NCBI GenBank assembly: GCA_946965045.2
Contig: OX337229.1
Coordinates: 6,138,001 to 6,202,000 of the forward strand
DNA: 64,000 nucleotides
Reading direction: 5' to 3'
DNA from: Epithemia pelagica
Taxonomy: Eukaryota > Protista > Bacillariophyta
A program made the translations under genes and the position numbers. A model generated the notes under the pieces. The model did no database searches. It was not told the origin of the DNA and saw only the letters and a program-made list of their open reading frames with translations. Shown here piece after piece: positions 10,080-36,442 of this stretch; positions within the stretch are counted from its first letter, which is position 1, and each line of letters begins with the position of its first letter.

Positions 10080-11782
10080 TGGACTTTTTTTGTGGAACAG
10101 GTCAACAGGTTCTTTGTTCGTCTCAAGGAGCGCTTTCTTTTTCTGGCATCGAGAAACGTTTTTTCATGGATGTGTTTTGACTGACTGGTAAGTTCTCGGT
10201 CCTAAGCTCTGGAGGTTATTGGTGATGACGATTGATTCGTGCTTGTTTTCCATCGAACACAATTTGACCGATCCAAATCCATCATACATGTTGCGTTGGG
10301 AGAGTTCGAAGGGAAATAAGCGGAGCGGTTTCGATGGTTGAGAAAACACACCTCGACGGATCAGAGAATAGGTGCTGATTCGCGCGTGACATGTGCTCGT
10401 TGAACTGTCCGAATGGATCGATTTTTTTTCAGCGGACAATGGTTGGTTGATTCGTCTCCGAGGGCATTTCGAGGGACGACGTCTTAGCATGCATATTTCC
10501 TCCTCCTTCTTTCTTGCCACTCAAATTGGTTCCATTGCTTTTCCGATGCTTTTGCTACAATGACCCATTGTCCATACCATTTGTTCAAGATAAAGACAAT
10601 ATGCATTCACTGCTCTCGTCATCATTAGCAATGGTCCGGCAAGCATCCTAGCAGGAATCTACCAACCAAGAACACATTCGTCTCGAACAAATAGAAATAG
10701 CTCTCTTCAACTTGAGCGACTGTACGCAAGTGACCTTGCAGGAATCTACCAACCAAGAATATTCGTCTCTGTCCCGTGCAAGATATATTTCTTAAATGAC
10801 CTGAGCGCTACTCTGCAACACTCCTGTCATTGCAAGGAATAAACTTGAATGTATCCAAGAACCGTCGAGTTGTCCACCGTTCCAAAGTAGTACCTCAATA
10901 GGACAATAACAATAACCACAACCACAAGATCTTGGTAGACGATGAGAGGACAACAATTTGAACAACACTAATTGGTGTCCTCTCATAAAGACGACTACGT
11001 TTCTGGTGGCCAAGATCGTGATGTGTGGTTTTGTTGATTATAGATGATGAATAAAAAATAAGTAGTCCCTCATTCGCACACAGCACGACGAGGATCAGAG
11101 GGCCTGCAAACAGAAGAAGCAACAGCAACCCCAACACAACCAGACAGAAGAGAACCGAATCACCAATCACAACAAAGAGGGATACCCCCTTCTGTCCGAC
11201 AGCGGACATAGCTGCGCATACCGCCATTGCCAATTGCCAGGCCATGGCGGTGCTTTTGGGGGAGGTGTGCGGCCAAACCGGATAGGAGGACAGACAGAAA
11301 CAAGCCGCATGATCATCACCCCGCCGGCGCGCGCATCGGGGGGGGTCGTTTTGGGGGAGTGTCGGGCGCGCAACGCTCACAAATTCCAAACCCATAGCCC
11401 AAACCAAGAAAAAGAGGCATTATTTTCTCTAGATTTTTAGGCTTTGGCCTGGGTTATTCGTAGTCGCACTACGGGGCCAAAGGTCAAGCTTGGCCCACTG
11501 AAGTAATGGCCAGGCTCGAAATTTATTGTCCTGCGCTTTCTTTCGCCAGCCACCCACGCCTGCCCCTCCAATCATCGTACAATCAAATTCAAACCCGTAA
11601 CGGTATGGGACAACGGGATTGGGTCTTGTTGCCGGACATTTTCGTTCATGATGCGACATTTCTGTCCACATTTCGGTCAAAATCGTCTACAATTTCTCCG
11701 CCATTGCTCGTGTCCATGGTCTTGGTATCTAATTTTCATTCACAGTTGATATGCCTAACTCTTCGGTACTAATTTAACGTAA

Positions 11783-12379
11783 CTATTTCGTGTCCTTCCG
11801 AGTTGCGTTGTTCTTGTCGCTCCTCGTGAAAAACGTAGTCATCTTCGTCTGGACTGTTGTTTTGTTGTTTTTGTCTGCCTTCTTCGGAGGGTATCGAACT
11901 GCGCGATACCCTCCGTAGTACAGCATGAGAGTTCCATCTCTGAATTCATCGATCGCTGTCACGCGGTCGTTGTGAGTGTCTTCTTCTTCGTTGTCCTCCG
12001 TAGCATCCACTCGACCCGTCTTCATAATACGGTTGTATTTTTCAATCAGCTTCATCCTCTTGGCCTCGTCCATCTCGGAATCCACATCTAAGGGCTCTTC
12101 TGCATCACTGTCGTCACTATCCGACATGTTCATGCGAAGGATCTTGTCGAAGGTCTTCACAGAGTCGTCGTCGTCGTCGTCGTCGTCCTTGTCTTCGTCC
12201 ATTTGGTTGTTGCTTTTTTCGCTCATCTCCACTTCTTCTTCTATCATTTCCTCCATCATCTCCTCTTGTAGGGCTTTATAGAACCCATGGAGATAATCCG
12301 TCGGTGCTCCTTCCTCTTCATCCCGTAGGATGGTTGATTTGACGCGGTCAAGTAGCTGCTGGGGGTCCGTCATGGTCAA
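11783..12379 (-). CDS. Orphan acidic protein with a C-terminal PIP-box-like motif (QTKMTTFF); paralog of 12757-13266
   Basis: 198-aa intronless ORF sharing N- and C-terminal blocks with the neighbouring ORF. Confidence 0.65.
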   Translation of the reverse strand: MTMTDPQQLLDRVKSTILRDEEEGAPTDYLHGFYKALQEEMMEEMIEEEVEMSEKSNNQMDEDKDDDDDDDDSVKTFDKILRMNMSDSDDSDAEEPLDVDSEMDEAKRMKLIEKYNRIMKTGRVDATEDNEEEDTHNDRVTAIDEFRDGTLMLYYGGYRAVRYPPKKADKNNKTTVQTKMTTFFTRSDKNNATRKDTK

Positions 12380-12511
12380 ATCCGCTTTGTTTCTTCTGCG
12401 TTCCGCTCCAACCCTATGTCTGGCTGGCTCTTGCTGACTCGGTATCAGTCTGCCGGGCGAGTTACTACATCCCTATGTATTCCATTCACTTGATTTAAAA
12501 ATCCAACGGAA

Positions 12512-12640
12512 ACGGTTATTAAAGACTAAATGGAAGGGCTCGTTTAGACCTAATACCTATTAGGTTACTTACTGGAACGGTTATTAAAGATTAAACGGGA
12601 CGGTTATTAAAGACCTAATGCCTATTATGTTACTTATCGA
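12512..12640 (+). repeat. Short direct repeats: ACGGTTATTAAAGA x3 and AGACCTAATRCCTATTAKGTTACTTA x2
   Basis: The 14-mer is exact at 12512, 12577 and 12600, in an AT-rich intergenic spacer. Confidence 0.85.
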
Positions 12641-12756
12641 AAATATCCGTCCATACGTTCTCGCTCTATCTTTCCTACGTGACACAACTTGTTTTATGTA
12701 TAAGTACAATTTGTTTCTATATTGAATATTTTTGTACTAAATATCCGATACATAGT

Positions 12757-13266: not shown

Positions 13267-13436
13267 CGTTGCTTGTTGGTTGTTTGGTTTCTTGTTTCTT
13301 GCCTGTGTGGACACTCGACCCACTATATCGCTAGAGTACGGGACAGTCTAAATACACAAGACTATCTAAGCCCTACGTTGTCAAAGCAGAGTAAGTAAGC
13401 ATATGTGTCTACTAAATTAATTAAGCTAATCTGGTA

Positions 13437-14018
13437 CTACGACATGATGGACCCATCATCTTCGACATTTTTAATTCGGTCTTCCATGTCACATACACGA
13501 AGATTTAACAGTTTCAATTCTTTCACAATTTCGAGAAGTATGCCTTGTGTCTCATCTCTGGCGGTTGTCTCGCGTGCACTTGTACGATAACGACGTGAAG
13601 AATGCAAGGGAATCTCGGAAGGAATTTCATCAGGAGTAGGCGACTCATGCGTCGGTGAATCTTTGTTTTGGCGATCCTCCCTTGTGTCTTCTGTCGGTTG
13701 GGTTTCTTCAATTATGTTGACGTTCCTTTTCGCTTGGTTGATAATATACTCGTTACAGAACACTTGGTAGAATGGATTTGTCTGTACACTGGTCCGCGCC
13801 GATCTTGGGTCACGGGGCAATCTTAAATTTTTGGGTTGGTAGGAAGATTTCTGTCCATCTGCAAATTGGAGTGTCACACGCTTCCTCGATCCAATGGTCT
13901 CTGGAACACGAGTGACCCATCCCAGGTAGTTCTTGCGACTGGAGGAACGAGAGTTCACCACCGCGATATCACCAATATTCCATACACATACACGATCCCC
14001 GCCACAGGATTCACTCAT
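13437..14018 (-). CDS. Orphan protein: N-terminal KOW/SH3-like beta-barrel, C-terminal coiled coil
   Basis: WNIGDIAVVN...LGWVTRV...RVTLQFADG...YQPKNL pattern; heptad ILLEIVKELKLLNLRVCDMEDRIKNVE. Confidence 0.5.
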   Translation of the reverse strand: MSESCGGDRVCVWNIGDIAVVNSRSSSRKNYLGWVTRVPETIGSRKRVTLQFADGQKSSYQPKNLRLPRDPRSARTSVQTNPFYQVFCNEYIINQAKRNVNIIEETQPTEDTREDRQNKDSPTHESPTPDEIPSEIPLHSSRRYRTSARETTARDETQGILLEIVKELKLLNLRVCDMEDRIKNVEDDGSIMS

Positions 14019-14366: not shown

Positions 14367-15323
14367 ATGTCATCTGACAACAAAAAGGGTGGAAACAAAC
14401 GCAAAAGCGAGGTCATTGACCTCACTGCATCGCCGGAGGAAGATCGTAAACGGCCTGCCCAGGACAGCATCAACAACGAGGAAGATCACAAACGGCCTGC
14501 CCAGGACACCAACAATAACAACAACGACAACAGCGGAACTACAAACGACAACAACAAACCTACAAACAACAACGACAACGACAACAATAACGATCACGAG
14601 GGGATGGCTGCAGAGGAGACTACGGACAACAACAACGAGAATGATGGTTCCCGGTCTTCGCCAGATGTCGTACAGTCTACTGGCGAAGTAGTAGAGGGAC
14701 TGACTCGGGCACAATTACGCGGTGGAGTACGAACGCAAATTACTCAACGTGTGAACTTTCCAGAACGGCCGACACATCCCATCCCTATGACAGAGCCAGT
14801 CGCTTGGCGACGTGAACCGGCTGAGCAGGAACCGCTGACACGACGTTTCAAGATGCATGACTATCCGGGACTCTATGAACCAACCGGTCACTTCAACGAT
14901 CTTATTGTTGGATTTCTTCGTGGGAAGGGGTTTCGTGATACTCCCCAGGGTAGATTGTTGCAAGTTTCACCAAGTGAGAGACTGGAGCGAGATCATTGTC
15001 CTATGGTGGTAGTAGATGGTGCGCATTTGGCTCGTGTTGATTTTTATCGGTGTGGTCCCCATATTGACAGGGAACGAATCTTCACTTTCCCGGAGTACTA
15101 TTGTTATCAGACTGTGGAGACCTACGTCATGTATTCCATGGGTGTGGGAATTTTGCGTATCGTGAGTTCCTCAAAATATGTTCATATTTTCAAACGCAAC
15201 GCTGATTCGCCGTGGGATTACCTGGGGCATCGAACAATCGCGACTGATAATATGGTGATCCGTACTTGTATGATTACTCAGGATCTTAAATTCACGGGAT
15301 TCATGAGTACTTATCCGTTGTAA
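14367..15323 (+). CDS. Orphan protein with NLS-like KRK, SIM-like VIDLT, N-rich disordered region and a C-terminal domain shared with 15403-16205
   Basis: 318-aa intronless ORF; DGAHLARVDFY...QTVETYVMY...LRIVSSSKYVHIF...W..LGH block. Confidence 0.65.
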   Translation: MSSDNKKGGNKRKSEVIDLTASPEEDRKRPAQDSINNEEDHKRPAQDTNNNNNDNSGTTNDNNKPTNNNDNDNNNDHEGMAAEETTDNNNENDGSRSSPDVVQSTGEVVEGLTRAQLRGGVRTQITQRVNFPERPTHPIPMTEPVAWRREPAEQEPLTRRFKMHDYPGLYEPTGHFNDLIVGFLRGKGFRDTPQGRLLQVSPSERLERDHCPMVVVDGAHLARVDFYRCGPHIDRERIFTFPEYYCYQTVETYVMYSMGVGILRIVSSSKYVHIFKRNADSPWDYLGHRTIATDNMVIRTCMITQDLKFTGFMSTYPL

Positions 15324-15402: not shown

Positions 15403-16205
15403 CTAGGTACGGTAAGGAGGATAAGACATTCGGAAAGAGCATTGGGGGTAGACCTCCACACCATTAAATGCGGGAGATACGAGAATACCGGATTCCACGG
15501 AGAATCGTTCTTCGTCCGTTGAGTGGTGGATGGGCATATGATTCACCAATGTCCACGACTCATCCCTCTTATTGAACAGGTACACTTTGGGGGCAGATGT
15601 CACTAATTTGGCGATGGGGTGGTTGTCTTCGTAAATAATTGAAGTCTTCACTACTTGGATTGCCTCCCAATCTTCTCGGCCGATGTAACCAGGAACAGCT
15701 GTTTGGTACAAATCTAGACGAATCAGATACTTTCCATCAGGAATACCGCGTGTTCCACCATGTCTCGTGCGGTCAGAGAATTCTGTACCGTTCTCGTGAC
15801 GGAGTGAAGCAGCGACAGCAGGGTCAAAGCCTTCGATTTCTGTGAGAAGCGCGGTGATGACCTGCATCGCATCACGGACAGGCGGACTGCAGTTCCGAAA
15901 CACAAAGGTACGAGAAAAGCGAGTGTTGAATGCCAGACGGCCGTGGGAGAGGGGGGGGGGATCCAACCAGTTGCGGACAACGTAGCTCTCACGTTAAGAG
16001 GATGTGCAGAAGAGTGAGCGGTCGCGGATTCCGTGTCCACGGGAGGAGATATGACAAAGCGGTCATTGATTGCTGTACCATGGTTACCACGGTGGTTGCC
16101 ATGATTGGAACGAGCCTGTGAAGGATCTGTTCCTTCATGGTCACCTTGGACAGGCTCATTTTGTTGAATTGAGTCGTAAAGACCATTGTTATTGTGAGTG
16201 CTCAT
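15403..16205 (-). CDS. Convergent paralog of 14367-15323; probably one gene interrupted by a frameshift in a C10 run (15951-15960)
   Basis: DGKYLIRLDLY...QVVKTSIIY...AKLVTSAPKVYLF...W.LVNH block. The upstream MSTHNNN frame (ATG 16205) joins it if one C is added, giving 267 aa. Confidence 0.55.
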
Positions 16206-16416: not shown

Positions 16417-17171
16417 TTATGTACTGGCAGGAGTTACTCGCGGGTGAATTGTAGGAGTGTTGTTTTGTGTGGATGGTGGTGGAGTGTTTGGCGATCGATT
16501 TCCACGTTTGGTGGTGATTCCGTCTTTCTGAAATTGACGGAACACGCCAGCTACCCCTTTGCGTTGAAGAAAGGGATCCCATTTGAGACAGAATGCCTCG
16601 ATGTCGTCCGACCACGAACCGAACTCAACGCCATGATGAGTAGCTATGCCCCGTACGATAGTCTGGACACGAGAGTACAATGTCTTGTCGCTTTGTTGAT
16701 ATGGTTTCCGCCAATGGAATTGGAATTTCAGTTCAAGACCATGGAATCCAAGTTTCACTGGTTGATCCTGTCGTTCGCCAAGACCAAAAAACTCAAAGTA
16801 CAAACGCTTCATCGTTAGTCGGTGTCTTGCAACATGGGTGCACGGTAGTTTCATACCGAGGAAATTTTCGATATTGTCTTCCGACGGAGAGGGATTGTTC
16901 GGAGAAACATTCGGGGGGTCATTAGTTGGAGTGTCAGACTCGGGGGAAGGGTGTACGGTATTGGGTGACGGAAGAGTACATGGGAAGGCGGCTGCAAATG
17001 CATCTTGTTGTGGTGAAGGTGGTGGGAAGGCGGCTGCAAATGCATCTTGTGGTGAAGGTGGTGGAGGAGGCACTGGTTGTCGGGCTGGTGAAGAGATTTC
17101 ATTGGTGGGGTCAGTATCTGTGACATCGTTGCATTCGTTTTCATTCGTGGAGAAGGTGATTCGAGCTGCAT
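16417..17171 (-). pseudogene. 3' part of the Crypton-type tyrosine recombinase gene (GCR1_C-like C-terminal DNA-binding domain), cut off by the copia B insertion
   Basis: LTMKRLYFEFFGLG...PVKLGFHGLELKFQFHWR...LYSRVQTIVRGI resembles GCR1_C. The frame joins 33183 precisely when the LTR element and one GCAT copy are removed (EATQH-A-ARITF). Confidence 0.8.
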
Positions 17172-17267
17172 TGAATAAATCCCGCCAACAGGTCGCATAT
17201 TGGCGGATACATGGTCGCATATTGGCGAATATGCATCGCCTACATATGCTGCTACGCATCTAGTTTT

Positions 17268-18050
17268 TGTTACAATTCTTTCTGAATCGTAGGGACATTG
17301 ATGCTCGGTAGAGCAGACAATCAGGTAGGTCACCAACCGATACAAGCTTCTCAGGGTCAGAGAAGCAAGCAAGTCGAAGTCTATCAGAAGGATAGTCGGG
17401 ACACAAAAGAGGATGTGATAAATGGTGATATTGTTAGATTGTGTGTTGATTACTACGATAGGTCTACGTGAAATGTTCGGTCCTGCCAAGGGTCATGTAT
17501 CATAGGTTCTTGGCGGCAACAGGTTTGGAATAGTTGGAGTTGATTCATGTGATGTATATGACATGTATATGTGGGCGGATAACATATACAGGGTCAACAG
17601 CTCTTGCTTTGGGTTGGCATAGTTGTTTTCATGGCGCGCAGCTTGTTGACAATTTGGAGATTGTGGGAATGGAAATATGGTCTCGCGTGATCGTGTGTCG
17701 TGCTTGGGATACTTAGACCGTTGGATCGGATAGATGCCGATAGCGCTCGGATGTCGCTTGGGCGCGCTCGATGATTTCGGGCGCGTACGCTTAGGGCGTT
17801 AGTACAGTGTCCGAGCAACGGCCAAATTTACGTCCGTTGTAATACCGCACGACCCAATTTAGTCTTGAGAGTGAGTTCGTCAATCTATTCTCACTTTTCA
17901 TGATTTGCGAAGAAATATAGGTCGATATAGCGCGAAGCTAGGAAACATAGCTCGAAGCTAGAGGGCATGATGCGATAGCACGAGGCTATGTGACATGGGG
18001 AATCGATGAGATGTAGAATCTAACCACCATAGACGGTGAGAATTCTAACA
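17268..18050 (-). repeat. 3' LTR of copia A
   Basis: Direct repeat of 25415-26197 (offset 8147); the gag-pol stop codon falls inside it. Confidence 0.95.
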
Positions 18051-21000
18051 CTCCCCACAACTCGTCGTTTCAGCCTTGTCATCATTGGATTTGTTGAGGT
18101 CTTGAACTTCTCCTTTCCAAAACAACAATGGCTTGAGCATGGGCCAGATAGATACGAAATCCCAATGTTTGCTAAGGATATCGGCGGGGTTGGTCTTTCC
18201 ATCTTTCCAGTAGAATGCAACATACTTTGCTGCGATGGCTTCACGAACTCGGTGGTATGACAGAAGATGGTGTCTCTTGGATAGTATGGAATGAGGAACG
18301 GTTGCATTGAGCACAACAGATCTGTTATCTCCGTACATGTAACTTCGCTCTCGGATAGGTACTCCAAGGTAGCGGAGAGAATGTCGTAATTCTGTAATCT
18401 GATCTATTGCTGTCCTTGCAGCCACGAACTCGGATCCATAGGTAGCAGTTTCCACTGTGCTCTGTCTCTTGCTGTACCAGTCAATAGGTGTTCCGTTCAA
18501 CAAATGTAGAACAGCAGTGACGGATTTACCAGTGACTATGTCATGCATGAGATTGGCATCAACATAATGAGTTGTAGTAACATAGCGGCCAAGAGGTGTT
18601 GGGCAGTCTTCAGGAATACGTTCACTTGCATTCGAATAGACAGTGCGAGTCCAATCAAATTCTTGGGTAGGAAGACTTGAATAATCAGGCTCTCCAATCC
18701 TAAATCTGATTGCGCCTTCTGGGAGATGTGCAAGGTATCCATAGATACGCTTGGCTCTATCAAGATGTCCTTTCCTCGGAGCAGCACGAAAGCGTGATAG
18801 CGTCATTGTAGCGGTGAAGACGTCGAAACGACCAATAGTGATCACCCATTGAAGTTGTCCAATCAGAGTTTGGAAATGGTTAGTACCTTCTTCATCAAGG
18901 AGCTCAGAATCGTCCAATTCAGGATGGTCTCCACCAATAAGAGGTGTTTTGGCTTTCTTGGGTTTCTCCTTGAAGACTCGTTCGAAAGTGTCCATCATCT
19001 TACCAATGTAGCGTCTTGGATCTGCTACTAATGTTCCATCAGAATCCTTGGTGTAACAACATCCCAAGTGGAAATCAATAGGTCCATCTCCTTTGAGTTT
19101 GAAGTTGTATTTCTCCTTCAGGATCTTGCAGATATTCCCAGGATCAGTAGAAATAATGGCTAAGTCATCAACGTATACGGCAATGTATTCGTAACAGTCT
19201 TCTCCAGGTGCCTTCCTCATCCAGATATCCGGATCTGCTTTGCTTGGTGAAAATCCCATGTCTGTCAAAACATCGAATAAGACATCATGCCAGCGTGCGC
19301 CTGATGACTTCAATCCATAAAGTGCCTTGTATATAATCAGGATGTGACCTTCTAATTCCTTGAATTCAGGTCCTGCGACAATGAAAAGTTTCTCCCCTGT
19401 CAAGGCTTCCAGATATGCGTTTCCAATATCTGCTCCCCATATTTCCAAGTCATTCAAAGTACCCAGGAATAAGGCAATGCGGAGGTTGCGAATGGAAACA
19501 ACACCTGAATAGATTGTCTCAACAGGTTCTTTTGTGAGATGTCCATCTGCGACAAGTCTTGCTTTATGTCGTCCATCATGTTTTACGTCAAAGACAAGAT
19601 GTACACGTATCTTATGATATCCTTCAGGTGCATTGGATACTTTCCCTTTAATGAAGATGGCTTTCCCAAAATCCTTGAATGTCTTGTAGGACTGGATCTG
19701 TGACAATTCTAATTCTGTTGCATCTTGCCACTTTGTGTTGCCATGTTGTTTATCAAGAGTGACAGCTTCCTCATAATTGCGTGGTACTTGGAATCCAAAC
19801 TTATACTTGACGGAATGGTGAACTTGTTTAATCCTTGACTGTTTGGCTGCTCGAATGAGACGTTTGCTTGTTTTGACATAACGTTTCAAATGCTTCCATC
19901 CAGGTTCGTTGAGTAAATCATGTTTCTTTCCATAAATTGCTACAGTGATCGGATCATCATTGGCGATGAGTGATAAAGGTTCATAGGTAGTCTCCCCAGT
20001 TTCCCAATCAACAAGCAAATTATATTTGCTCCCCTTGTAATCTGGATCAGTTGTGTTCAGTGGGCCTTGATGGGCAATGACGTCCCTGAACCTGAAAAGA
20101 TTATCTCCAGAGGTTTGAGCTTGGTTATCTCGTTCGATATACTCCATGAGTTGATTATAGGATATCATCTCATCAACATCAGAATTTGTCTTTCGGTAGA
20201 TATACTTGACACGTTCTTCCTGTTTCGTTGCTTCTTCATTAAGATCAATGACTCGTTTGATGACACGTGCACGGTGTCGCTCCCCATTTTCTTCTGTGTC
20301 GCATAGGAATGTGCGTCCTATCATGTCGTCAAAATCGATCGTGGGCATTGGTTTGGATGGATCTTCACTATCACTGCGAATGAAGACAGTGTCAGCTTGC
20401 TTATCATTGTCATCCTTGTCAGACGAATCCTCCCCTGAAGGTCGATCCACACGTAGGTTAGGTGTAGTGGATTCAACACGGCGAACGGCAGAACGGTAGA
20501 TGATCTGGTTATCCTGGGTGAGAATCTTCCAAGTAAAAGAATCACCAACGTTGTGAGCAAAACCAACCCAGTGGCCAAGTTTCTCATCAGAAGAAGATGG
20601 ATATGAACCGGAATTGGGTTCAGCGGGGTCGACACGATAGTAAACCTCATCCCAGAAAGGAAAGAACAAGAGATGAGTAATGTCGGGTGGGCGTCCGGAG
20701 AGAGCCTCAAGAGGAGTGCGACCGGAGTGGGTGGGTGATGACGTATGGTTCAATAAGTCACAGACATACTCAAGGCAAAGAAGCCAGGTGTTGGCAGGGC
20801 AACCAGTGGCATTCATGAGAGCGTTGGTCATACGTTTAACGGTCTGGTAACGGTTTTCAGCCTTATTCTGGTGTTGATGATAAGGTTCGGATCGATACTC
20901 CCCAATAAGCAAAGTGCGAAGAATGTCTTTAACCTTTTGAGAGATGAGAGATGAACCACCATCACTGATAAGAGTCTCCATGGCACCACGAAACCGGATG

Positions 21001-25378: not shown

Positions 25379-25400
25379 GAAACCACAAGGAAATAAGCTT

Positions 25401-25414
25401 TGAGACTGTTAATC
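25401..25414 (-). promoter_or_regulatory. Primer-binding site of copia A, complementary to a tRNA-Asn(GUU) anticodon arm (half-tRNA primer)
   Basis: GATTAACAGTCTCA abuts the LTR; its reverse complement is TGAGA-CTGTTAA-TC. Confidence 0.65.
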
Positions 25415-26197: not shown

Positions 26198-26280
26198 GTT
26201 TTCTAGTCATAATTTTGGTCTAGCCACTTGTTGCACGCCGTATACACCGTGTTGTAGCGTGTAGTGGCAGGATTTATACA

Positions 26281-26294
26281 GTTTATCAGACCCA
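26281..26294 (+). promoter_or_regulatory. Primer-binding site of copia B, complementary to a tRNA-Ile(GAU)-like anticodon arm
   Basis: GTTTATCAGACCCA abuts the LTR; its reverse complement is TGGGT-CTGATAA-AC. Confidence 0.6.
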
Positions 26295-26304
26295 TCATCG
26301 CAGA

Positions 26305-26560
26305 GCCGCAGTGGTTTAGCTGGTAAATGTTTGCTGTTGGCTCGTGGTGCCAGGGGTTCGATTCCCCTTAGACTCAGCTTTAAGTTAAGACGCCCAATTT
26401 CTGGGGGCCGCCATATTTGGGGTGTATGGTACAAGACGTTTCCCCGCTGGTTAAAAGTGCATGTTCTTCTCAAGGGTGGCCGATCAACCCCGGTCGACTG
26501 GGGTTCACCGCCTTGTACATACGCTATATGCCAATGCACGGGGGAACTAATATGTTTTTT
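26305..26560 (+). ncRNA. tRNA-derived Pol III-type unit (A box, B box, structured body, T6 terminator) inside the copia B leader
   Basis: A box TGGTTTAGCTGG 26312-26323; D stem GTTT/AAAT; perfect T arm AGGGG-TTCGATT-CCCCT 26352-26368 at canonical spacing. Acceptor and anticodon stems are degenerate. The first run of 4 or more T is at 26555-26560. Confidence 0.55.
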
Positions 26561-27042
26561 GTCTAACTCACCAACTATGCTAGCTAAGCTATGCATCATG
26601 TGAAACTCCTTGGAGTCTTGCTCTCTGCCTTTTGCCCGTACTGGCAGCGGCTGATCACCGCTTGGGAGTGTTCGCGCTAAGCTACTCGTCACGGTATGCT
26701 TGCGGCACTACTTATAGTTCACACTCGTGATGTGTGACCCATGGCACTCTCCCACGTGACGGGGAGCACTCGCTTAAGTGAGCGATTGTTTTGGTAATCT
26801 TTTCTCCATACATGAAAATATAGATACCTCCTTTTGCACTGTGCCGACGCACACGTCCTAAGTATTTGTTCTCTGCCGACTGCAGCGCAAACGCAAGTCG
26901 ACACTACTTGTGCACCTTAATTCCAGGTAGAATCGCGAAATCTGCGATCTGCATCACCTTTTGGCAATGCCTCCACACTTCTGTGTTTTTTGCCTGTGTT
27001 TTGCTCTGAACCTCTCCTGCTTCTGGCTCTCTTGCTTTCCTT

Positions 27043-28593
27043 TTGCCTTCCACCATGTCTTCATCCACTGCCCCTGAAAATCCCAAGGAAGATTTCAAGG
27101 CTGCCGTTAAACGCTGTGGATACAATGATGCCACCGTGACCTACATCATTGAGCAGGGTTTTGATGATGCTCAATCGTTCATGACTGTTGCGGTCCATCA
27201 AGTGCCGTCGATGTTGAAGATGATGGCGAAGACCCCTCCAGAGAACGGGGCCTTTCCCTTCAGTGCTAACCTGCAGCTCCACGGCTTCCGAATGTGGCTC
27301 GAATACCGTTCGTCTCGTGGTCAGGCCCTTAAAGTCTCACTTTTCTCTGATCCGCCCCTGATCAAGAAATGGACCAAACGTACCCAGGAACTGTTTGCAC
27401 TCAACAAGGAAGTTGCCTCCGATGAACTGACCCCACCAAAAGAGTTGACTTCGTTTACTCAGTGGGAGGTGTTTAACGATGCCTTGCTCACGTTCCTCGC
27501 ACAGCATCGCAATCCCACAACGGGTGTCCCCTTGACATACGTCCTTCGTGAAACTAAGCCTGTTGGTTCTGAAGCAAGGAATGCTGCCTACGATACTATC
27601 GATGACGATTTGATTGCTACTACTATCCTGCAAGGTGATCAGTATGCCCTTGACAATCAACGCGTCTTCACACTGATGAAACCTTTTCTTGTTGGCGGAC
27701 CTGGCCTGACGTTCATCAAGCCACACCAGAAGAAGAAGGACGGCCGTGAAGCGTATCTTGCGTTGACTCGCCAAGCTACTGGAACAGCAGCTGTCACCAT
27801 CCGCAAGAAAGAAGCATACGCTGCTATTGCCGACGCAAAGTTTACAGGCCGCGGTCGTTTCTCGTATCAACAATATGTTCACCGCCATCAGAAAGCTCAT
27901 AATACGTTGGCTGAACTTGATGAACCCGTTGCCGAAACCAAAAAGGTAACCGATTTCCTCAAAGGTATATCGGATCCCTCTTTGGCGGCGGGAAAGACGG
28001 TCGTCAACGGTGACGCAGCAAAGCTTTCTGATTTTGAAGCATGCCAGCAGTATTTTGGCACGTTGATTGCTGCATCCCGTACCGACAAGACCAATGACGA
28101 GAATCGAAAGATTGCTGGTGTGGGTACGACTAAGACTAGTGGAAAGAAGAATGGTCGTAACAAGCAGAATAAAAAGAAGACGCGTCATTACAGTTTGGAT
28201 GAATGGCGCAAGCTCTCTGATGAAGAGAAGGCCGAAATTCTCCGTGCCCGTAAAGAACAAAAAGACGCTAATGGAAAGCGCAAGGCCGGAGCCGTGCGCA
28301 CTGAAGATGAAAATGGCTCTCGCAAGTTGAGTAAAACTGAAACTCCAAAGTCTGATGACATGAAATTGGAGACCACTGACCTGGATGGCGACGACGCGCC
28401 GAACCATTCCGAGCCTGATCCTCCTGTTGCTGATGAACCGACTGTTCCCAAAACCTCAGCTGGAAACAGTTTCGGACGCTTTGCCCATAGTAAAAAAGGA
28501 TCTACAAAGCCGCACAACCCTGATGAAACCAAGGAGCCTACAACTGCCGTTGCGAAAGCTGCCCTTGCAGAGAAGGCCACAAAGCAGACCTGA
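27043..28593 (+). CDS. Copia B Gag (516 aa)
   Basis: GVPLTYVLRE, DNQRVFTLM, KKDGREAYLAL and CoDi-type YSLDEWRKLSDEEK motifs; ends in a TGA in frame with pol. Confidence 0.88.
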   Translation: MPSTMSSSTAPENPKEDFKAAVKRCGYNDATVTYIIEQGFDDAQSFMTVAVHQVPSMLKMMAKTPPENGAFPFSANLQLHGFRMWLEYRSSRGQALKVSLFSDPPLIKKWTKRTQELFALNKEVASDELTPPKELTSFTQWEVFNDALLTFLAQHRNPTTGVPLTYVLRETKPVGSEARNAAYDTIDDDLIATTILQGDQYALDNQRVFTLMKPFLVGGPGLTFIKPHQKKKDGREAYLALTRQATGTAAVTIRKKEAYAAIADAKFTGRGRFSYQQYVHRHQKAHNTLAELDEPVAETKKVTDFLKGISDPSLAAGKTVVNGDAAKLSDFEACQQYFGTLIAASRTDKTNDENRKIAGVGTTKTSGKKNGRNKQNKKKTRHYSLDEWRKLSDEEKAEILRARKEQKDANGKRKAGAVRTEDENGSRKLSKTETPKSDDMKLETTDLDGDDAPNHSEPDPPVADEPTVPKTSAGNSFGRFAHSKKGSTKPHNPDETKEPTTAVAKAALAEKATKQT

Positions 28594-31500
28594 GGCTGTG
28601 TGCCCAGTGATGAAATTGATAAAACGAATCTTATCCGTCCACATTTCTCACTTGTAGGCACCCCTACCTTCAGCTTAGCCTTTGCACACCGTTTATGTGC
28701 TGCCGTATCACAGTCCCATACCACTGATCCGATTGATCTGACATGTGAAATGGACTCGCATGCTGACACTTGTTGTGTTGGTCGCAACTTTGTGAAATTC
28801 AGGGAACCTGACCGTTACATCACTGTTTCCCCATTCTCAGAGGAATATAAACCCCTCGCGCGTATCCCCGTCACCACGACCGCCACTGTCTGGACTGATG
28901 CCCACAACAATAGTTATCTATTGCTGTTTCACGAGTCGTTATTCTTCGGGGACCGATTGTCCCAATCATTGATTTGTCCCAATCAACTGCGTCCAAACGG
29001 CCTCATTGTCCATGATGTGCCGCGTCAGTTTGACCCTTACAGCACACACAGCATTCGTATTCCCGATGCTGACCTGACCATTCCTCTAGAAATGTCCGGT
29101 GTTATCTCTGGCTTCGCGACCACGAAGCCAACCCCGGAGGAGCTCGAGTCGCTCCCACGGATAGTCATGACTGCTGATTCGGTGTGGCACCCTCATTCGT
29201 CCACCTTTGCTGCCGCGGAGGAGAAAGCCAATGCATCCAATGCATCTGCTGTCCGCCAAGTTGATCCGAATTCGATTGCCGCATCCTGTGTCCCGCGATT
29301 GGTTGCTGCCGTCCGATCATACGACGACACCTATGGCTATTGCATGGAACTTGAGAATGACGAGGATGAACTATGCAACCGCTTAGTTGCTGCCGTTCGA
29401 GTGTCCCATCCACCAAGTGCCGAGGACACTGTGGACATTGAGGACCTTGATCCCGACAAATACTTTCTCAAAGCCGTTCAGTCTGCTTCGTCACGACCAA
29501 CGAAAGCCGTAAAAGTCTTGCCATCTTCTTCTAAGCCTGTACTTGATCCCCAGACCTTGTCTTCTCGATGGAATGTCGGCCTAACTAAGGCCAAGAAGAC
29601 TTTACAAGTGACAACCCAGGCTGGGGTCCGAAATGTCCTTGTCCCATCTGAACGCAAGGTTCGAAAGAAAGCTCCATGGCTCAAATTCCCGAATGTCAAG
29701 GGACGATGGTTTTGCGACGAGATGTTCTCCAAGTGCCCATCGCTTGATCTTCACACGGGTGCTTCCGTATTTACTGATGGAAAGGGCTATGATTTTGTCT
29801 ATCCCTGGAAATCAAAGAAGCAACACCCTGAAGGTCTGATGTCCCTTATCCAGAATGTCGGAATTCCTCAGACGTTAATTTCTGATGGTGCGCAAGAGCT
29901 ATTTCATGGACGTTCTCGTGAGATCTGTAATGAGTACCATATCAAACAAGAAGTGACCGTCCCATACAGTCAATGGCAGAATGCCGCAGAAGCGAGCATC
30001 CGTGAGTTGAAGAAAGGTGTTATTAGGAAGTTACGTCAAACTGGTGCACCACGACGCACATGGTCCTATGCGCTGAAGTGGGTTGCCTCTGTCCGCCAGT
30101 TAACTGCCTCTGATATCCCTGAACTTAATGGACGAACGCCATTTGAACACGTTCTTGGATCGACACCCGACATCTCTCCCATGGCTTTGTTTGATTTCTA
30201 TCAACCTGTATACTATTATACGCCGTCGCATGACTTCCCTCATGAGCGTAAATGTATTGGGCGCTGGCTTGGTCTTGCCGATGACTGTATTGATGACATG
30301 GCCTTCAACGTCTTGACAGAGAAAGGTCGAGTTATTGTCCGAAAAGATGTGTGGGCAATCCCTGACGACGATATGAAAAATCCCACAATCCGTCAACAAC
30401 TGGAAGTCTATGATGGTCTTATCAAGACTCTCCTCGTGGATACATCGCCGTCCTCCGATGAAGATGCCGCCAACGTTTCCCCTGATCCACCCGATGATTT
30501 CTTTGGAGAAGACGAAAGCGAATCTCTCTTTCCTGCTGCTCTTGACTCCGATACACCTCTCCCTGATGCTGACGATTACACTCCAGAGGAGTTAGACGAA
30601 TATCTCACAGCCGAAGTCATGCTGCCGCATGGCGGGGACCAGGCCAGAGCCAAGATCATAGGCCGCTCCAAAGATGAACATGGCCGACCAATTGGCAAAC
30701 GTGATCCAAATCCAATCTTAGACACACGTTTCTATGACGTGCTGTATCCCGATGGATCGACCGAATCTCTTGCTGCCAATCTCATTGCCGAGAACCTTTA
30801 CTCTCAAGTCGACACTGAGGGCAACTCCTATGCCATTGTGAAGGATATCATTGGACATCGCAAAACCAAGGACGCTGTCCTCCGAACGGATCCGGACTGG
30901 TTGAATGGCCGTAAACGCCATACAACCGTTGGTTGGGAACATGAGTGTGAACTCTCCGATGGTTCTACTGTTTGGATCCCTCTCAAAGATCTCAAAAACG
31001 ATTCGCCTGTACAACTAGCCGAATATGCTGTTGCGGCGGGGCTTGCCAAAGAACCGGCCTATGCCTGGTGGGTTCCACATACGTTACGCAAACGTGGTGT
31101 GCTTCTTGCAAAAGTAAAATCTCGCTATTGGAAACGTACCCACAAATATGGTATTGAACTGCCCAAAACCGTTCAAGAAGCTCTTGAGATTGATCGTCGA
31201 ACGGGGACTGATTTCTGGCGGAAAGCCATCGAAAAGGAGATGAAAAATGTTCGCATTGCCTTTGAATTCCGTGATGATGACAAAGTACCAATTGGATACA
31301 AACATATCCCGTGTCATATGGTCTTTGATATCAAGTCTGATCTTCGCCGTAAAGCCCGACTGGTTGCCGGCGGGCATAAGACTGATCCACCGAAGGAATC
31401 CACGTACTCCAGTGTTGTATCTCGTGATAGCGTACGAATTGCATTCACTATCGCTGCCCTTAATGGCCTGGACGTGTTGGCCGGGGACGTACAAAATGCA

Positions 31501-32850
31501 TACCTCAATGCACCAACAAAAGAGCGAACTTATATTACGGCGGGACTAGAATTTGGTCCCGAAAACGTTGGCCGACCTGCACTGATTGTTCGTGCTCTGT
31601 ATGGTTTGAAGAGTTCTGCTGCTCGTTGGCGTGATCACATTGCCGCAACACTTCGTGAAATGAAGTTCAACAGTTGCTTGGCTGACCCTGATGTCTGGCT
31701 TCGACCTCAAGTCCGACCATCTGATGGGTTCCAATACTATGAGTATGTACTTGTCTACATAGACGACATACTCTGTGTCAGTCATGATCCGCGATCGATC
31801 ATGAATGATCTGGAAAAACGGTATACCATCAAACCCGAGAGTATTAAAGACCCAGACGAATACTTGGGATCTGAGATTCGACACTATACCATACCAGATA
31901 CTGACGATCCTGAGAACAAACCCCGATGGGCCATGTCCTCCGACAAATATGTTAAACGTGCCATATCTGAAATTGAGACCGAACTGTCTAAAGTTGGCCA
32001 AAAGCTACAGACACGAGTCTCAACTCCGCTTGCCACTGGGTATCGTCCTGAGATCGACTCATCTCCTGAACTGGACCCCCGACGTGCAAATTACTATCAG
32101 GGACTAATTGGTATCCTTCGTTGGGTTGTGGAACTTGGTCGTATCGATATCATTGTTGCCGTATCACAACTGTCCCGATATCTAGCCATGCCACGTGAAG
32201 GACACCTCGAACAAGCCTTGCACATTTTTGCATACCTAAAAGCGCATGGACGTTCCACCCTAGTGTTCGACGACACAACTCCGACCTTCGACGAGGATCG
32301 TTTCTTCCAGGCAGACTGGTCTGAATACTACCCTGATGCTAGTGACCCTTTGCCGCCCAATATGCCACCACCTCGTGGACGGGCTGTTACCACAACTTGT
32401 TTTGTTGATGCCGATCACGCTGGTTGTCTTGCTACGCGTCGCTCACAAACTGGTATTCTTATGTTCTTACAACGAGCACCTATCTTGTGGTATTCCAAAC
32501 GACAGAGTACTGTTGAGACATCAACATTTGGCTCCGAATTTGTCGCAATGAAGACTGCCATCGAACAGATAGAGGGTTTCCGTTACAAGTTGAGAATGAT
32601 GGGCATTCCACTTGATGGCGAAACCAATGTGTTCTGTGATAATGAATCTGTGTTCAAGAGTGCAACCATGCCTGAAGTCACTCTGAAGAAGAAACACAAT
32701 GCGATTGCTTACCATCGCACACGTGAGGCACAAGCCGCCAACATCGTGCGTATCGCCTGGGAAGAAGGTGAAACCAATCTTGCGGACCTGCTGACAAAAT
32801 CGTTACCAGGACCCCGATTGCGTTTTCTAGCACAACGTGTTTTGTGGTGA
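28594..32850 (+). CDS. Copia B Pol (PR-IN-RT-RH), in frame with gag after a single TGA
   Basis: EMDSHADTCCVG; WFCDEMF/LISDGAQE/QNAAEASIRE; VLVYIDDIL; FVDADHAG/FCDN; no interruptions. Confidence 0.95.
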   Translation, partial: GCVPSDEIDKTNLIRPHFSLVGTPTFSLAFAHRLCAAVSQSHTTDPIDLTCEMDSHADTCCVGRNFVKFREPDRYITVSPFSEEYKPLARIPVTTTATVWTDAHNNSYLLLFHESLFFGDRLSQSLICPNQLRPNGLIVHDVPRQFDPYSTHSIRIPDADLTIPLEMSGVISGFATTKPTPEELESLPRIVMTADSVWHPHSSTFAAAEEKANASNASAVRQVDPNSIAASCVPRLVAAVRSYDDTYGYCMELENDEDELCNRLVAAVRVSHPPSAEDTVDIEDLDPDKYFLKAVQSASSRPTKAVKVLPSSSKPVLDPQTLSSRWNVGLTKAKKTLQVTTQAGVRNVLVPSERKVRKKAPWLKFPNVKGRWFCDEMFSKCPSLDLHTGASVFTDGKGYDFVYPWKSKKQHPEGLMSLIQNVGIPQTLISDGAQELFHGRSREICNEYHIKQEVTVPYSQWQNAAEASIRELKKGVIRKLRQTGAPRRTWSYALKWVASVRQLTASDIPELNGRTPFEHVLGSTPDISPMALFDFYQPVYYYTPSHDFPHERKCIGRWLGLADDCIDDMAFNVLTEKGRVIVRKDVWAIPDDDMKNPTIRQQLEVYDGLIKTLLVDTSPSSDEDAANVSPDPPDDFFGEDESESLFPAALDSDTPLPDADDYTPEELDEYLTAEVMLPHGGDQARAKIIGRSKDEHGRPIGKRDPNPILDTRFYDVLYPDGSTESLAANLIAENLYSQVDTEGNSYAIVKDIIGHRKTKDAVLRTDPDWLNGRKRHTTVGWEHECELSDGSTVWIPLKDLKNDSPVQLAEYAVAAGLAKEPAYAWWVPHTLRKRGVLLAKVKSRYWKRTHKYGIELPKTVQEALEIDRRTGTDFWRKAIEKEMKNVRIAFEFRDDDKVPIGYKHIPCHMVFDIKSDLRRKARLVAGGHKTDPPKESTYSSVVSRDSVRIAFTIAALNGLDVLAGDVQNAYLNAPTKERTYITAGLEFGPENVGRPALIVRALYGLKSSAARWRDHIAATLREMKFNSCLADPDVWLRPQVRPSDGFQYYEYVLVYIDDILCVSHDPRSIMNDLEKRYTIKPESIKDPDEYLGSEIRHYTIPDTDDPENKPRWAMSSDKYVKRAISEIETELSKVGQKLQTRVSTPLATGYRPEIDSSPELDPRRANYYQGLIGILRWVVELGRIDIIVAVSQLSRYLAMPREGHLEQALHIFAYLKAHGRSTLVFDDTTPTFDEDRFFQADWSEYYPDASDPLPPNMPPPRGRAVTTTCFVDADHAGCLATRRSQTGILMFLQRAPILWYSKRQSTVETSTFGSEFVAMKTAIEQIEGFRYKLRMMGIPLDGETNVFCDNESVFKSATMPEVTLKKKHNAIAYHRTREAQAANIVRIAWEEGETNLADLLTKSLPGPRLRFLAQRVLW

Positions 32851-33004
32851 TTACATGATCGAATTCATTGTCCTCACACCCCTCTTTTATTGTCCGAATA
32901 GACACCCCTCTTAATTGAGAAAAAATAGTCCTGATGGACCGGCCTCTGCTGAAACAAGTCGTGGGCGACCTAGTCGAAATGCTTCCGATCTAGCTCGCGG
33001 GGAC

Positions 33005-33178
33005 TGAATAAATCCCGCCAACAGGTCGCATATTGGCGGATACATGGTCGCATATTGGCGAATATGCATCGCCTACATATGCTGCTACGCATCTAGTTTT
33101 CTAGTCATAATTTTGGTCTAGCCACTTGTTGCACGCCGTATACACCGTGTTGTAGCGTGTAGTGGCAGGATTTATACA
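33005..33178 (+). repeat. 3' LTR of copia B (174 bp), preceded by PPT-like GCGGGGAC (32997-33004)
   Basis: Matches 17172-17267 + 26203-26280; contains GGTCGCATATTGGCG twice. Confidence 0.93.
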
Positions 33179-35512
33179 GCATGTTGTGTCGCTTCGGATA
33201 TGGCTTCGACAGTTGTTCCAATCCGGGATTGGAAAGATGATGATATGGCCTCGGAGAAACGCATGATTTTCCGATCAGTTTCCATGTTCATCCGAATTTC
33301 CATTTGCTTCAAGTGGTTGATAATAGCCTCTGTACTCTTCGTCATACTTTCCTTAACATTGTCGATTTCAAAGAAAATCTGGTACATGTGTTCCTTCAAA
33401 ATTTCATGTTCCACATTGAGATGCTCAAATCGTTGATTCACACCGGGAAGACACTGGTCAATAGCACGTATCTTGGGATCTTGGGAAGTTTCGTTAAGTT
33501 TCGAAAGTAACTTGTGCATTTCGTCTTTATAGGCCAGAAACTCAGGATCTTGGAATATGGGAAAATCAGTAAAAAGAATGTGTGTCAAACGGATTTCTGA
33601 CTCTTGCGAGTCGGTAGGGTCAGGGTGTTCGAGAATCGACATAATGGCAGCCACATCTTGTATAAGGACATCACGGAGAAAACGGAGGAAATGTAGGAAA
33701 CAATATGCGGTAGGGTGTTTCTTCCTGGCACTCGTGTTCTGCTCTTTTTCGGCATCTGTTAAGTCTGATGAAACCCATTCCTCCTTCTGTTCCAGCCAGG
33801 GCCATATTTTTTGTGCCAGTGAAGGTGGTACGGTCAGTCTGTCTCTGGGTAGCCAGTATCCGTCAGACTGTTCGAAGCCAGCCATACAACGGATCGCAGC
33901 AATAGGTATTTTAGAAGAATAACGTGTCTCTTGGGTATCTCTATCCCAGTTACCTGTGTACAAAAATATAAACCAGTGAGATACATTTGGCTGTCATATG
34001 AGCAGAGTGGTACCAGCGAACACTTACCTAACTGTTTGATAAGCTCAGGGCTTATCTCTTTGAATTCGCAATGAGTCGGTGCAATGTGCCTGCACCAGTG
34101 GGTAGTGTAGTCCGACACGATACCGAGTTGATTGAAGATATTCTCGATTTCTGTACGAAAATTCGAAACCTTCACTGATTCTGTAGGTGAACCATCTGCA
34201 CTTGTAAGAATTTTGAAGTCAAACCAAGAAGAGTTGTTCCGTAAATCAGGTTGGTTGAATGTTCCAGAGAATTCCTCGGTCATATGGAACCGAAAAAACA
34301 AATACATAGCCATTGCTCCAATGGGACAGGCCATTACGTTTCGATGACGTGTTGCACGAGCAAACTGTGATGGTGCACCGGCTTTTATGGTCTTTCCCGT
34401 TTGGCACTCCATGAGTACAATCGGCATCTTGTCGATATCGCCAGGACGGTTAATCGCAAAAACTCTTAGGTCGGACAATTCCGCTAGATGCAGACTCTCG
34501 CTCCGTAGTATAGAGGCGTAGTTCATCAAGAATGAAAAGCGGTGTCGTAAAGAAGCAAAGACAGTCTTGTTGGTATTCGACTTTCCGTCATACCTGCAAC
34601 CGCGAGACCAAAACATATACTCGATCTTGTTAATCATTTCAAAATGCTCGAAGGGAGATGTCTCATTCACTTTCTCCTTGTAGTTACGTTTCTTAACACG
34701 GGTAGTCCGTGACTGTAGAAATAATAGTTATGAGAGATGATATGCACAGACAGGGTCAACAGTCGACAGACAGTCACCAATTCACTGGTTAAACGTACCT
34801 TCGCTATATATATCAGAGATCGGACACGTGGAGAGTCCACATCGCTCCATACTCGTTCTCCGTCTTTCTTCGACCCCTGAGTGTCCCATTGGTGTTTGAG
34901 AGCACTCCTGTACGTATTGATTGTAGATTCGGAGAGGGGGTTAGTGGGATCAAGATTGCCTGGAGGGATTTTGGCACCGGGAGAGTGTTTCAGAAGATTG
35001 ATGATAGGCTTGTATGTTCTGATAACATGCTTGAAGTCTGCGTAATCGAAATCTCCAGGTTTTTTTCGTTTTCCTTTTGTTTTTTCGCGAAACACGTTGT
35101 AAAAAATAAAATAGAAAGTACCGGGTTCATCCACGAGAAACTGCGATCCAGCAGGCAGGTAGGCACGGTGAATTCGGCAAAAACTCAAATACTCCTTGAT
35201 TTTGTATTCGTACGCTTTTCTCGTATTTTCGTTTTTGAGAGAATCGCTTACGGTTTTCGTCAATGATTCCATCATCGTTTCCATCTCTTCGTCGTCCATA
35301 CCGATGGGAGATTCCTCCTCCATCTCCGTTGCTGTAGCGTTAGCCGTAGGGGTTGTAGGAGCAGGCGTTGTAGGAGTAGGCGTTGTTGTAGATCCATTGC
35401 GTGGAGTACGCTGGGGAGATCGCTCAGGACTGCTGACAAGGGAGTCATCTTCCTCCTCACGATGAGGACGACGACGACGAGAAGAACGGGCACGAGAAGG
35501 AGGGGTGGACAT
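33179..35512 (-). pseudogene. 5' part of the Crypton-type tyrosine recombinase gene (NDC10_II-like), introns 34713-34798 and 33954-34027; 974 aa when rejoined to 16417-17171
   Basis: Catalytic set R (LRSES), K (GKTIK), HxxR (HWCRH), W (GNW), Y (TRYSS); ATRHRNVMACPIGAMAMYLFFRF motif; canonical GT-AG introns restore a single frame. Confidence 0.88.
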
Positions 35513-36442
35513 GCTTTGTAGTTGCCTCTTTAATGAAATTATGAGACTGTTTCTATCTTAGCCTATGCGTAAAAGAAGATGTGGATGCCTATGATGATCG
35601 TTCCTAATGATTTGGACATGAAATAGGATGGCCAATGATGGCCAATGCCATGCAACAAAAAAGAGTGGAAGATGGGTAAACGCTGCATCCCCAGGCATCT
35701 ACGAATGGATTTGTACAGTAGTATCAGGGCGATGAACGCCTGGAATGCCGTCCATTGAGGACGGTATGCTTTGGCGACTGAGAGTATGCATGCACCTATC
35801 GCCGTATGTATCTTATGTCTTTGGTGGTAAGGACAGACTGCATTGGAAGAGGGTCAGACCGTTGGCCTGGGAGAAATAATAAGTAATTATTCTGAAAATA
35901 ATGACGTGATACTACTGCCAGGCCAGTGGCCTGGGCCAAAGTTTGGTGTGGCAGACAGACGAATATCGTGGTTGGCTTGGCCTCGACTTTGGCCTGGCAC
36001 GAAATAAAGTTGACTCGTAAAGAATATCCCAACCACGTGATAAGTCTACAGTGTAGATCTGTATTATTTCCGGCGCGTTAGCGAACGAAAGTAGAATACT
36101 TCCGAAAACCTAGGTAGCGCCCACATCTTTCGCCTCCTTGTCGATCTTTTGGGCCCATTGGTTCTTAAACCATGGAACGACCAATGCTGACATCATAACG
36201 CCAGAGACAGCCCCAACAATCGAGCCTTTGGACGAGGAACGAAATCGAAAAGCAGCGCGCCATCGATTTCCCGGCACATGCACAACGAATAAAAATACCG
36301 CAGTCTGTTTTTATAAATTTATGTTCGGCTACTCCAAAGCGACGACTCAATCATTCCTAACTTTGCATCGCAGCAGATCAGACTCACCTTGACAATCGAT
36401 GAACGCACTTCATAACCCTCCTTACTTTGCTCTTGCGCGCCT

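Follow-up and report, generated by a model that had tools for sequence, protein, structure and literature searches.

The question raised by this locus was whether a tyrosine recombinase (YR) gene, a set of five small open reading frames (ORFs) and two nested long terminal repeat (LTR) retrotransposons, lying together in a 64,000-nt stretch of the diatom Epithemia pelagica (contig OX337229.1, positions 6,138,001 to 6,202,000, forward strand; the whole stretch is here called the window), represented one mobile element with its own accessory genes, and, if so, what these genes might do for it. An earlier note, made from the letters of the window, had proposed a multi-gene YR element, and this was borne out: a Crypton-type unit had moved whole with its five genes, as seen from near-identical copies in unrelated flanks. 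The locus is read here, with good confidence, as an autonomous-type Crypton transposon with a fixed accessory module, the window copy of which is dead.

The reconstructed, Copia-free unit was searched against the assembly of the window's own genome (60.5 Mb, 23 contigs). An uninterrupted copy was found at C9:3453045-3461639, and its alignment to the window (36010 to 11404) had 8,597 columns with 27 differences (99.7% identity); the flanks of the two copies were unrelated, and the similarity broke off at identical bases on both sides. A third copy at C10:1191502-1196032 (97-98% identical) shared the left end and was truncated within the accessory gene O2 (see below) beside a host DEAD-box helicase gene; identities over the set of three copies were 97.8-99.7%. 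Both termini were also recognized in three distant relatives (C4:1092154-1097914, C2:3757780-3773929, and C10:1893473-1902444), in which the left end was retained over about 170 bp (76-80% identity) and the right end over about 190 bp (73-91%). The C9 alignment, together with the termini common to these diverged relatives, defined the element as 11404-36010 on the minus strand, with the following extent and ends:

11404 to 36010, minus strand: whole Crypton-type element, 8,596 bp after taking out 17172-33182, with an end-to-end match to the C9 copy
35862 to 36010, minus strand: left (YR-side) terminus, starting CTTTATTTCGTGCC and containing five direct CCAGGCCAA-type motifs
11404 to 11600, minus strand: right terminus, ending AATAATGCCTCTTTTTCTTGG, with GGCC-rich motifs and one CCAGGCCAA at 11446-11454

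The element was thus where the earlier note had put it, its ends being shifted from 36000 and 11440 to 36010 and 11404 by the C9 alignment, and the remainder of about 8.5 kb expected after removal of the nested LTR elements agreed with the length given above. The GGCC-rich motifs noticed at both ends corresponded to clustered CCAGGCCAA-type motifs: the element had seven of them against 1.65 expected, all in a single orientation, with five crowded into the outermost 150 bp on the YR side and a single one about 45 bp short of the opposite end. Neither a target-site duplication (TSD) nor a terminal inverted repeat was found at the element ends, and no terminal repeats of the element's own were found; the ends, when joined, gave no long palindrome (longest inverted match, 15 nt), and a comparison of the junctions of two complete copies and of four that were partial or diverged revealed no clear common core, either as a terminal direct repeat of 4-6 bp or as microhomology with the target. 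An inverted repeat of two perfectly matching 8-nt arms, set 1 nt apart (CCAGGCCA C TGGCCTGG), was observed 77 nt inside the left end, at window positions 35918-35934 (about 77-93 of the element); it was partly kept in relatives, and one arm was mutated in the C9 copy. Beyond the assembly, the element stretch was contained in two DNA runs of the organism, and two biofilm metagenomes contained pieces of the accessory region (150-280 nt, 0-2 mismatches), which indicated its presence in natural populations.

The recombinase gene occupied the left-hand part of the element and was composed of three exons, the last of them interrupted in the window:

34799 to 35512, minus strand: YR exon 1 (238 codons), from the splice model
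34713 to 34798, minus strand: YR intron 1 (86 nt, GT..AG), after which the frame resumes in register with the homologue at locus L011
34028 to 34712, minus strand: YR exon 2, with R (ILRSE), K (TGKT), and HxxR (THWCRH), matching NDC10_II (E 5.7e-17)
33954 to 34027, minus strand: YR intron 2 (74 nt, GTAAGT..AG, phase 1), from the splice model
33183 to 33953, minus strand: first part of YR exon 3, with W (GNW) and the catalytic Y (TRYS), matching NDC10_II (E 1.2e-13)
16417 to 17171, minus strand: second part of YR exon 3, with the conserved, weakly GCR1_C-like C-terminal tail and the stop codon

This model, with its two GT-AG introns, had exactly the 974 codons claimed by the earlier note, and the complete R-K-HxxR-W-Y catalytic set was present in canonical order and invariant across the intact relatives. 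The matched Pfam family, NDC10_II, is a YR-like domain derived from Cryptons. The YR was searched exon by exon; exon 2 had no match in a PDB sequence search. No reverse transcriptase (RT) domain was found by Pfam in any ORF of the element, the only RTs being those of the two inserted Copia elements. As for the proposed GCR1_C-like tail, GCR1_C (PF12550) was the top match for five of six YR tails of relatives and the sole match for four of them, at the same profile positions and with scores of 13-19 bits (E 0.002-0.11) against a cut-off of 23; remote YR homologues from other sources (P0021 and P0030) were annotated with both NDC10_II (PF16787) and GCR1_C. The proposal thus held as a sub-threshold signal in relatives and failed as a Pfam match in the element's own subfamily, and the tail may be assigned, weakly, to GCR1_C.

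The remaining part of the element harbored five accessory genes and one tandem repeat:

15403 to 16205, minus strand: O2, the short paralog of the O2/O3 family, on the same strand as the YR; frameshifted in the window, intact on C9 (308 aa)
14367 to 15323, plus strand: O3 (318 aa), opposite to the YR, with SIM-like (SUMO-interaction motif-like) VIDLT, an acidic run, a disordered linker, and a weakly NTF2-like C-terminal domain
13437 to 14018, minus strand: O4 (193 aa), on the same strand as the YR, with a beta barrel of SH3-like fold (Tudor/KOW/PsaE class), followed C-terminally by a long helix
12757 to 13266, minus strand: O5 (188-aa ORF, 169 aa from the first ATG), on the same strand as the YR, with QLKMEMFL, which resembles a PIP (PCNA-interacting protein) box
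11783 to 12373, minus strand: O6 (198-aa ORF, 196 aa from the first ATG), on the same strand as the YR, with TFDKILRMNM plus an acidic/Ser run and the PIP box QTKMTTFF
12506 to 12635, no strand: 65-nt x2 tandem repeat between O5 and O6, with three ACGGTTATTAAAGA copies

All five extra ORFs reported in the earlier note were therefore present, with the reservation that O2 was not intact in the window copy and was whole on C9; the two paralog pairs were recovered as weak pairs (O2/O3, E 8e-6; O5/O6, E 1e-8), and the iteron-like repeat cluster was identified as the 65-nt tandem repeat, the copy number of which differed in a relative (joint 12519-12608).

Homologues of O3/O2, O4, and O6 were found about 1-4 kb from YR genes of 31-59% identity at six or more other loci (at least six), and the YR-linked genes were as follows:

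C1, C8, and C16 loci: O4-like, two O2/O3-like, and one O6-like
C5 (two copies): O3-like
ctg1311l of a second assembly, ERZ21939226: O3-like, O2-like, and O4-like
C4 locus: O3-like and O6-like
C2 locus: O3-like, O4-like, and O6-like

The order and orientation of the accessory genes varied by lineage, and their content recurred. Other YR copies thus did carry these ORFs, which was the co-occurrence that the earlier note had wished to see examined, and they did so both in near-identical copies and in deeply diverged lineages; as to its concern that the ORFs might be single-copy host genes, no standalone host version was seen, except for weak O4-like matches and one distant solo gene (see below).

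The accessory ORFs were all intact in C1, C16a, C8, C5, and C9, synonymous sites were saturated or very highly diverged in most of the deep pairs, and the amino acid identity among C1, C16a, and C8 was 46-64%. Ratios of nonsynonymous to synonymous substitution rates (dN/dS), taken against the closer, partly decayed relative D, were 0.33 for O2, 0.16-0.27 for O3, 0.29 for O4, and 0.36 for O6, and the value of 0.34 for the YR tail fell in the same range. Intact frames, saturated synonymous divergence, and dN/dS of 0.16-0.36 together argued that these genes are protein-coding, selected, and long associated with the YR. As predicted genes, O2 to O6 are best described as the core accessory module of the element, not as casual cargo.

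The canonical PIP-box pattern for PCNA binding is Qxx[ILM]xx[FY][FY], usually located near a terminus and followed by basic residues. All eight members of the O5/O6 family contained Qxx[I/M]xxF[F/L], and seven of them had Qxx[I/M]xxFF no more than about 20 residues from the C-terminus: QTKMTTFF, QTRMEMFF, QTTMKSFF (two members), QKNIKDFF, QTKIDSFF, and QMKMEDFF. The exception was O5, in which QLKMEMFL lay about 60 residues before the end. The Q of this motif was one of three invariant columns in the O5/O6 alignment (28-37% identity), and the family also kept TFDKILxMxM followed by an acidic/Ser run, as well as an HPNDKITA...LHYG..RRV hairpin. The PIP-box motifs suggest that the O5/O6 family docks on PCNA. 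The host PCNA gene was located at C6 (locus L038); a complex prediction in which residues 140-198 of O6 (its tail) were paired with host PCNA, entered as two exon pieces, scored 0.31 versus a mark of 0.34, which speaks neither for nor against docking. In a C5-like Crypton lineage, L044:7279-7668 (minus strand) encoded a 129-aa protein with CxxC...CxxC and PIP-like QKTMGAFI near its C-terminus, situated roughly at the place taken by the O6-type gene in other lineages.

In a PIAS-type SIM, a run of acidic or Ser residues adjoins the hydrophobic core [VIL]x[VIL][VIL]. The long O3-type paralog of seven lineages (C9, C5a, C5b, C1, C16a, C8, and the ctg1311l locus) had at its N-terminus a SIM-like core, [VIF]I.[LIV], with a Ser/Asp/Glu run behind it; the cores were VIDLT, FIDLC, VIYIL, VIVLL, VIVID, and VIDLC, and this paralog would accordingly be a candidate SUMO-binding protein, as judged from the motif. 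Both the PIP box and the SIM, which the earlier note had pointed out in the accessory proteins, were kept across homologues of only about 25-37% identity and so were not chance sightings.

The C-terminal domain common to O2 and O3 was modeled with pLDDT of about 70-85, and three structure searches returned mostly NTF2-like or cystatin-like folds, each of them weak (Foldseek E >= 0.05, VIA Z <= 4.3, and atlas TM 0.4-0.47); the domain is possibly NTF2-like on the basis of this model. A C48/Ulp1 peptidase identity was considered for the O3 domain and rejected: the language-model look-alike score of 0.80 was at chance level, and no conserved His or Cys fitted the C48 site. The predicted O4 model (mean pLDDT 68; barrel, 85-91) displayed a small SH3-like barrel of five strands together with helices, the C-terminal one of which was long (coiled coil). 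Its barrel matched the KOW region of eS4 (Foldseek E 5e-4) and tied, at Z of 6-7.4, with PsaE, NdhS, Tudor (PHF19 and SETDB1), NusG/Spt5 KOW, and PWWP domains. The KOW-like protein of the earlier note was therefore confirmed as to its SH3-like barrel and not as to Pfam KOW, which was not matched; since Tudor, PsaE, and PWWP matched equally well, the term KOW-like was valid for O4 only as a fold class.

The state of the window copy was accounted for by two nested insertions, found by self-comparison of the window and both encoding RVT_2 (Ty1/Copia-type) polyproteins:

17172 to 33178, plus strand: Copia-type LTR retrotransposon B, in YR exon 3, with TSD GCAT, LTRs of about 175 bp (TG..CA), and RVT_2
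17268 to 26197, minus strand: Copia-type LTR retrotransposon A, inside the left LTR of B, with 783-bp LTRs, TSD GTTTT, and RVT_2

Copia B was inserted into YR exon 3, and Copia A was subsequently inserted into B; the two LTR pairs were each 100% identical, and both insertions were thus recent. In one of the two nested elements, a polyprotein ORF of 1,876 aa was open throughout (18045-23675, minus strand). Taking out 17172-33182 fused two minus-strand ORFs into a 521-aa open frame, and the frameshift in O2 was caused by a 2-bp insertion at 15959-15960. With its recombinase split by Copia and its O2 frameshifted, the window copy was dead, while the C9 copy was apparently an undamaged sibling without these lesions. 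Relative D on C10 had lost the YR core, carried stops and frameshifts, and is a decaying, non-autonomous copy. The C10:1893473-1902444 stretch (76-82% identical) lacked the YR core and O5 and retained decaying O2, O3, O4, and O6; its right-hand 1.9 kb recurred 39 kb away at C10:1854095-1855951, which suggests a segmental duplication.

Under the reading of a Crypton with a fixed accessory module, the element's own 974-aa YR, with its Ndc10-like core and weakly GCR1_C-like tail, would cut and rejoin the element, and movement would probably, as is assumed for other Cryptons, proceed via an excised circle. The lineage retains a fixed set of four or five small accessory genes inside the element: O4, the two O2/O3-type paralogs, and one or two acidic proteins with a PIP box. 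The likeliest role of this module, as far as the motifs tell, would be to link the element with the replication and chromatin of its host: PCNA at replication forks, along with SUMOylated proteins of chromatin, might for instance serve as anchors for the YR complex or the excised circle.

Comparison was then made with known systems. Cryptons encode one protein, to which some oomycete elements add a C48/Ulp1 (SUMO) peptidase (Kojima & Jurka 2011, PMC3212892), and the CryptonA 'Glomhoppers' have a single ORF (2026 paper, PMC13465315). In full-text literature searches, neither a fixed multi-gene module nor a PIP-box protein was found described for any Crypton; the present element is a Crypton with a conserved accessory module, as compared with the one or two genes of described Cryptons. 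[quoted passage not shown] CryptonS of oomycetes and Phaeodactylum (PMC3212892) shared with it stramenopile hosts including diatoms, a conserved region C-terminal to the YR and, in some members, a second gene tied to the SUMO pathway (Ulp1); however, CryptonS has no GCR1_C and has 5-6 bp terminal direct repeats, mostly TATGG, while the present element had CTTTATTT.../...CTTGG and a weak GCR1_C signal, and its accessory genes were not peptidases. The NDC10_II core and the GCR1_C-leaning tails in relatives and remote homologues placed its architecture nearer to CryptonF than to CryptonS.

Starships of Pezizomycotina are likewise YR-mobilized DNA elements with additional genes, but they have a DUF3435 captain, extend over tens to hundreds of kb, and carry variable, often host-useful cargo, while the present element had an NDC10_II YR and not DUF3435 (Pfam), was 8.6 kb long, and contained a fixed, conserved gene set. 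The word cargo, which the earlier note had used in the Starship sense, did not fit a gene set that was fixed, under purifying selection, and found in the company of every lineage; the VANDAL-like anti-silencing role mentioned in the same note is speculation. Unlike DIRS and Ngaro elements, the present element had no RT, LTR, or ICR structure of its own. Clamp binding by mobile elements has precedents, in that pogo transposase uses PCNA and TnsE of Tn7 uses the beta clamp. A PIP box is also present in LINE-1 ORF2p (PMC7617806). All these systems have in common with O5/O6 a clamp-binding motif on a mobile element, presumably linking mobility to replication; the motif is found there in an RT, a transposase, or a targeting subunit of an unrelated mechanism, and it is predicted here on a separate small acidic protein of a YR element.

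Several points weigh against the reading of a Crypton with a conserved module. The gene models and the transcription of the YR and O2 to O6 were predicted, no Pfam family was assigned to O2 to O6, and GCR1_C was not detected by Pfam in this subfamily's own YR tail, its signal in relatives being below threshold. The loose contig ends listed for the DNA runs contained no circle junction. The empty-site allele, which the earlier note had expected to join the two flanks, was not reconstructed: a paralog of the right flank on C7 continued into unrelated DNA, and the left flank was unique apart from a 46-bp repeat. A Seminavis robusta locus with an Ndc10-type YR and a 5-kb metagenome contig were both without the accessory module. 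Lastly, the eight strongest placed matches to the O4 profile (see below) were all from this organism and none from others.

The distribution of the module was assessed as follows. With O4 and O3 as queries, word-based searches matched this organism alone, and no O4 match was found in JGI metagenome contigs. An O4-family profile run against 1.84 billion representatives matched 13 proteins, of which the eight strongest placeable ones were assigned (P0008 and P0010-P0013 were left out): three on ERZ21939226, two from the first O4 search, and three that matched ORFs from this genome's loci. ERZ21939226, an ENA assembly, was attributed to the same organism because a neighboring gene there was 100% identical to this genome. 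YR homologues did occur outside this organism, e.g., in Seminavis robusta; as no outside accessory homologues were found, the module may be young and species-restricted or simply unsampled. A distant solo O4-like gene (P0014; L046:10001-10606, on ERZ21939226 ctg1276l) encoded a 201-aa protein with a barrel and a C-terminal coiled coil; it stood among Kelch genes, a heliorhodopsin gene lay 6 kb away, and no YR was present in the surrounding 10 kb. This gene may represent a relative of the accessory protein in the host, or else a copy that has been domesticated.

Of the other explanations, a rather unlikely one in our estimate is that the element is a chromosomal-episomal diatom replicon, the excised circle of which would be copied by the host replisome, brought in via the PIP-box proteins, and passed on to daughter cells by the SIM, barrel, and coiled-coil proteins, perhaps together with the 65-nt repeats; a milder variant, counted within the same small chance, would have the PIP-box protein steer integration to replication forks, by analogy with TnsE for Tn7. 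Stated more generally as a plasmid- or virus-like replicon of 2-micron style, in which a replicating circle would be one phase and integration only another, with accessory proteins serving copying (PCNA) and partitioning (chromatin/SUMO, with the 65-nt repeats as the partition site), the idea appears unlikely. A YR with four or five small genes and a tandem repeat in 8.6 kb does resemble the layout of 2-micron-type plasmids, and conservation extended to the PIP box and the SIM as well as to the coiled-coil barrel protein; however, no circle-junction reads or contigs were found among those listed, the ends had no inverted repeats, no replication initiator or capsid gene was detected (Pfam), and the depth in DNA runs, for which contig depth is a poor measure, was not clearly above that of several genomic copies. 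Were it true, the element would be a nuclear 2-micron-like plasmid that also integrates.

That the five ORFs are captured host genes, carried passively in the manner of Starship or Pack-type elements and with no role in the element, is improbable. The accessory ORFs had no recognizable transposition domain, the solo O4-like gene among Kelch genes stood away from any YR, and weak, uninspected matches to the O4 barrel occurred elsewhere in the genome, all of which would suit passengers, but the same families recurred beside YRs of 31-59% identity, with intact ORFs and synonymous divergence that was saturated or high in most pairs, their content was fixed, not variable, and no close host paralog was found. 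A segmental duplication or assembly artifact in place of a mobile element, as might be suspected from the presence of only two full-length copies and from a partial C10 relative that itself lay in a duplication about 39 kb apart, is scarcely credible, given that copies lying in unrelated DNA had both of their limits in common to the base pair, that the termini were conserved in diverged members at other loci, and that the sequence was present in two independent DNA runs plus biofilm metagenomes.

The DNA around the element displayed several further features. On its right side, window 9201-11403 had a 2.2-kb paralog, a Kelch-repeat-gene flank, at C7:374819-377002 (L041; about 92-93% identical), which ended exactly at the Crypton boundary 11403 and was followed by DNA absent from the window; a contig in run X2 had a continuation similar to that of the C7 paralog. 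The element may have inserted where a repeat unit ends, or its own end may have been rearranged. A Kelch-repeat gene segment was present in tandem at window 5928-7141 and 8939-10149 (84% identical), with many more copies in C7 326-377 kb. On the left side, the 46-bp repeat at window 36070-36115 was genome-wide and often paired about 3.4 kb apart (e.g., C11:1979773 and 1983149), and it probably belongs, as a terminal repeat, to a different transposon family next to the Crypton. Further along, three 78-nt tandem repeats (82-85% identical) at window 37491-37730 lay within an 830-aa ORF (37116-39608, minus strand) of no Pfam family. Elsewhere, the genome contained at least 11 full-length silicon-transporter genes, a gene content that marks the host as a diatom.

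To our knowledge, no class of eukaryotic DNA transposons is understood less well than the Cryptons, and we know of no Crypton for which a transposition mechanism has been shown. Returning to the Crypton with its fixed accessory module, the conserved PCNA-docking and SUMO-interaction motifs give concrete points at which to test how a YR element interacts with the replication and chromatin of its host, and the apparently undamaged C9 sibling offers an experimental starting copy in a diatom. If the accessory proteins prove necessary, the line between a transposon and a plasmid- or virus-like replicon in eukaryotes would blur.

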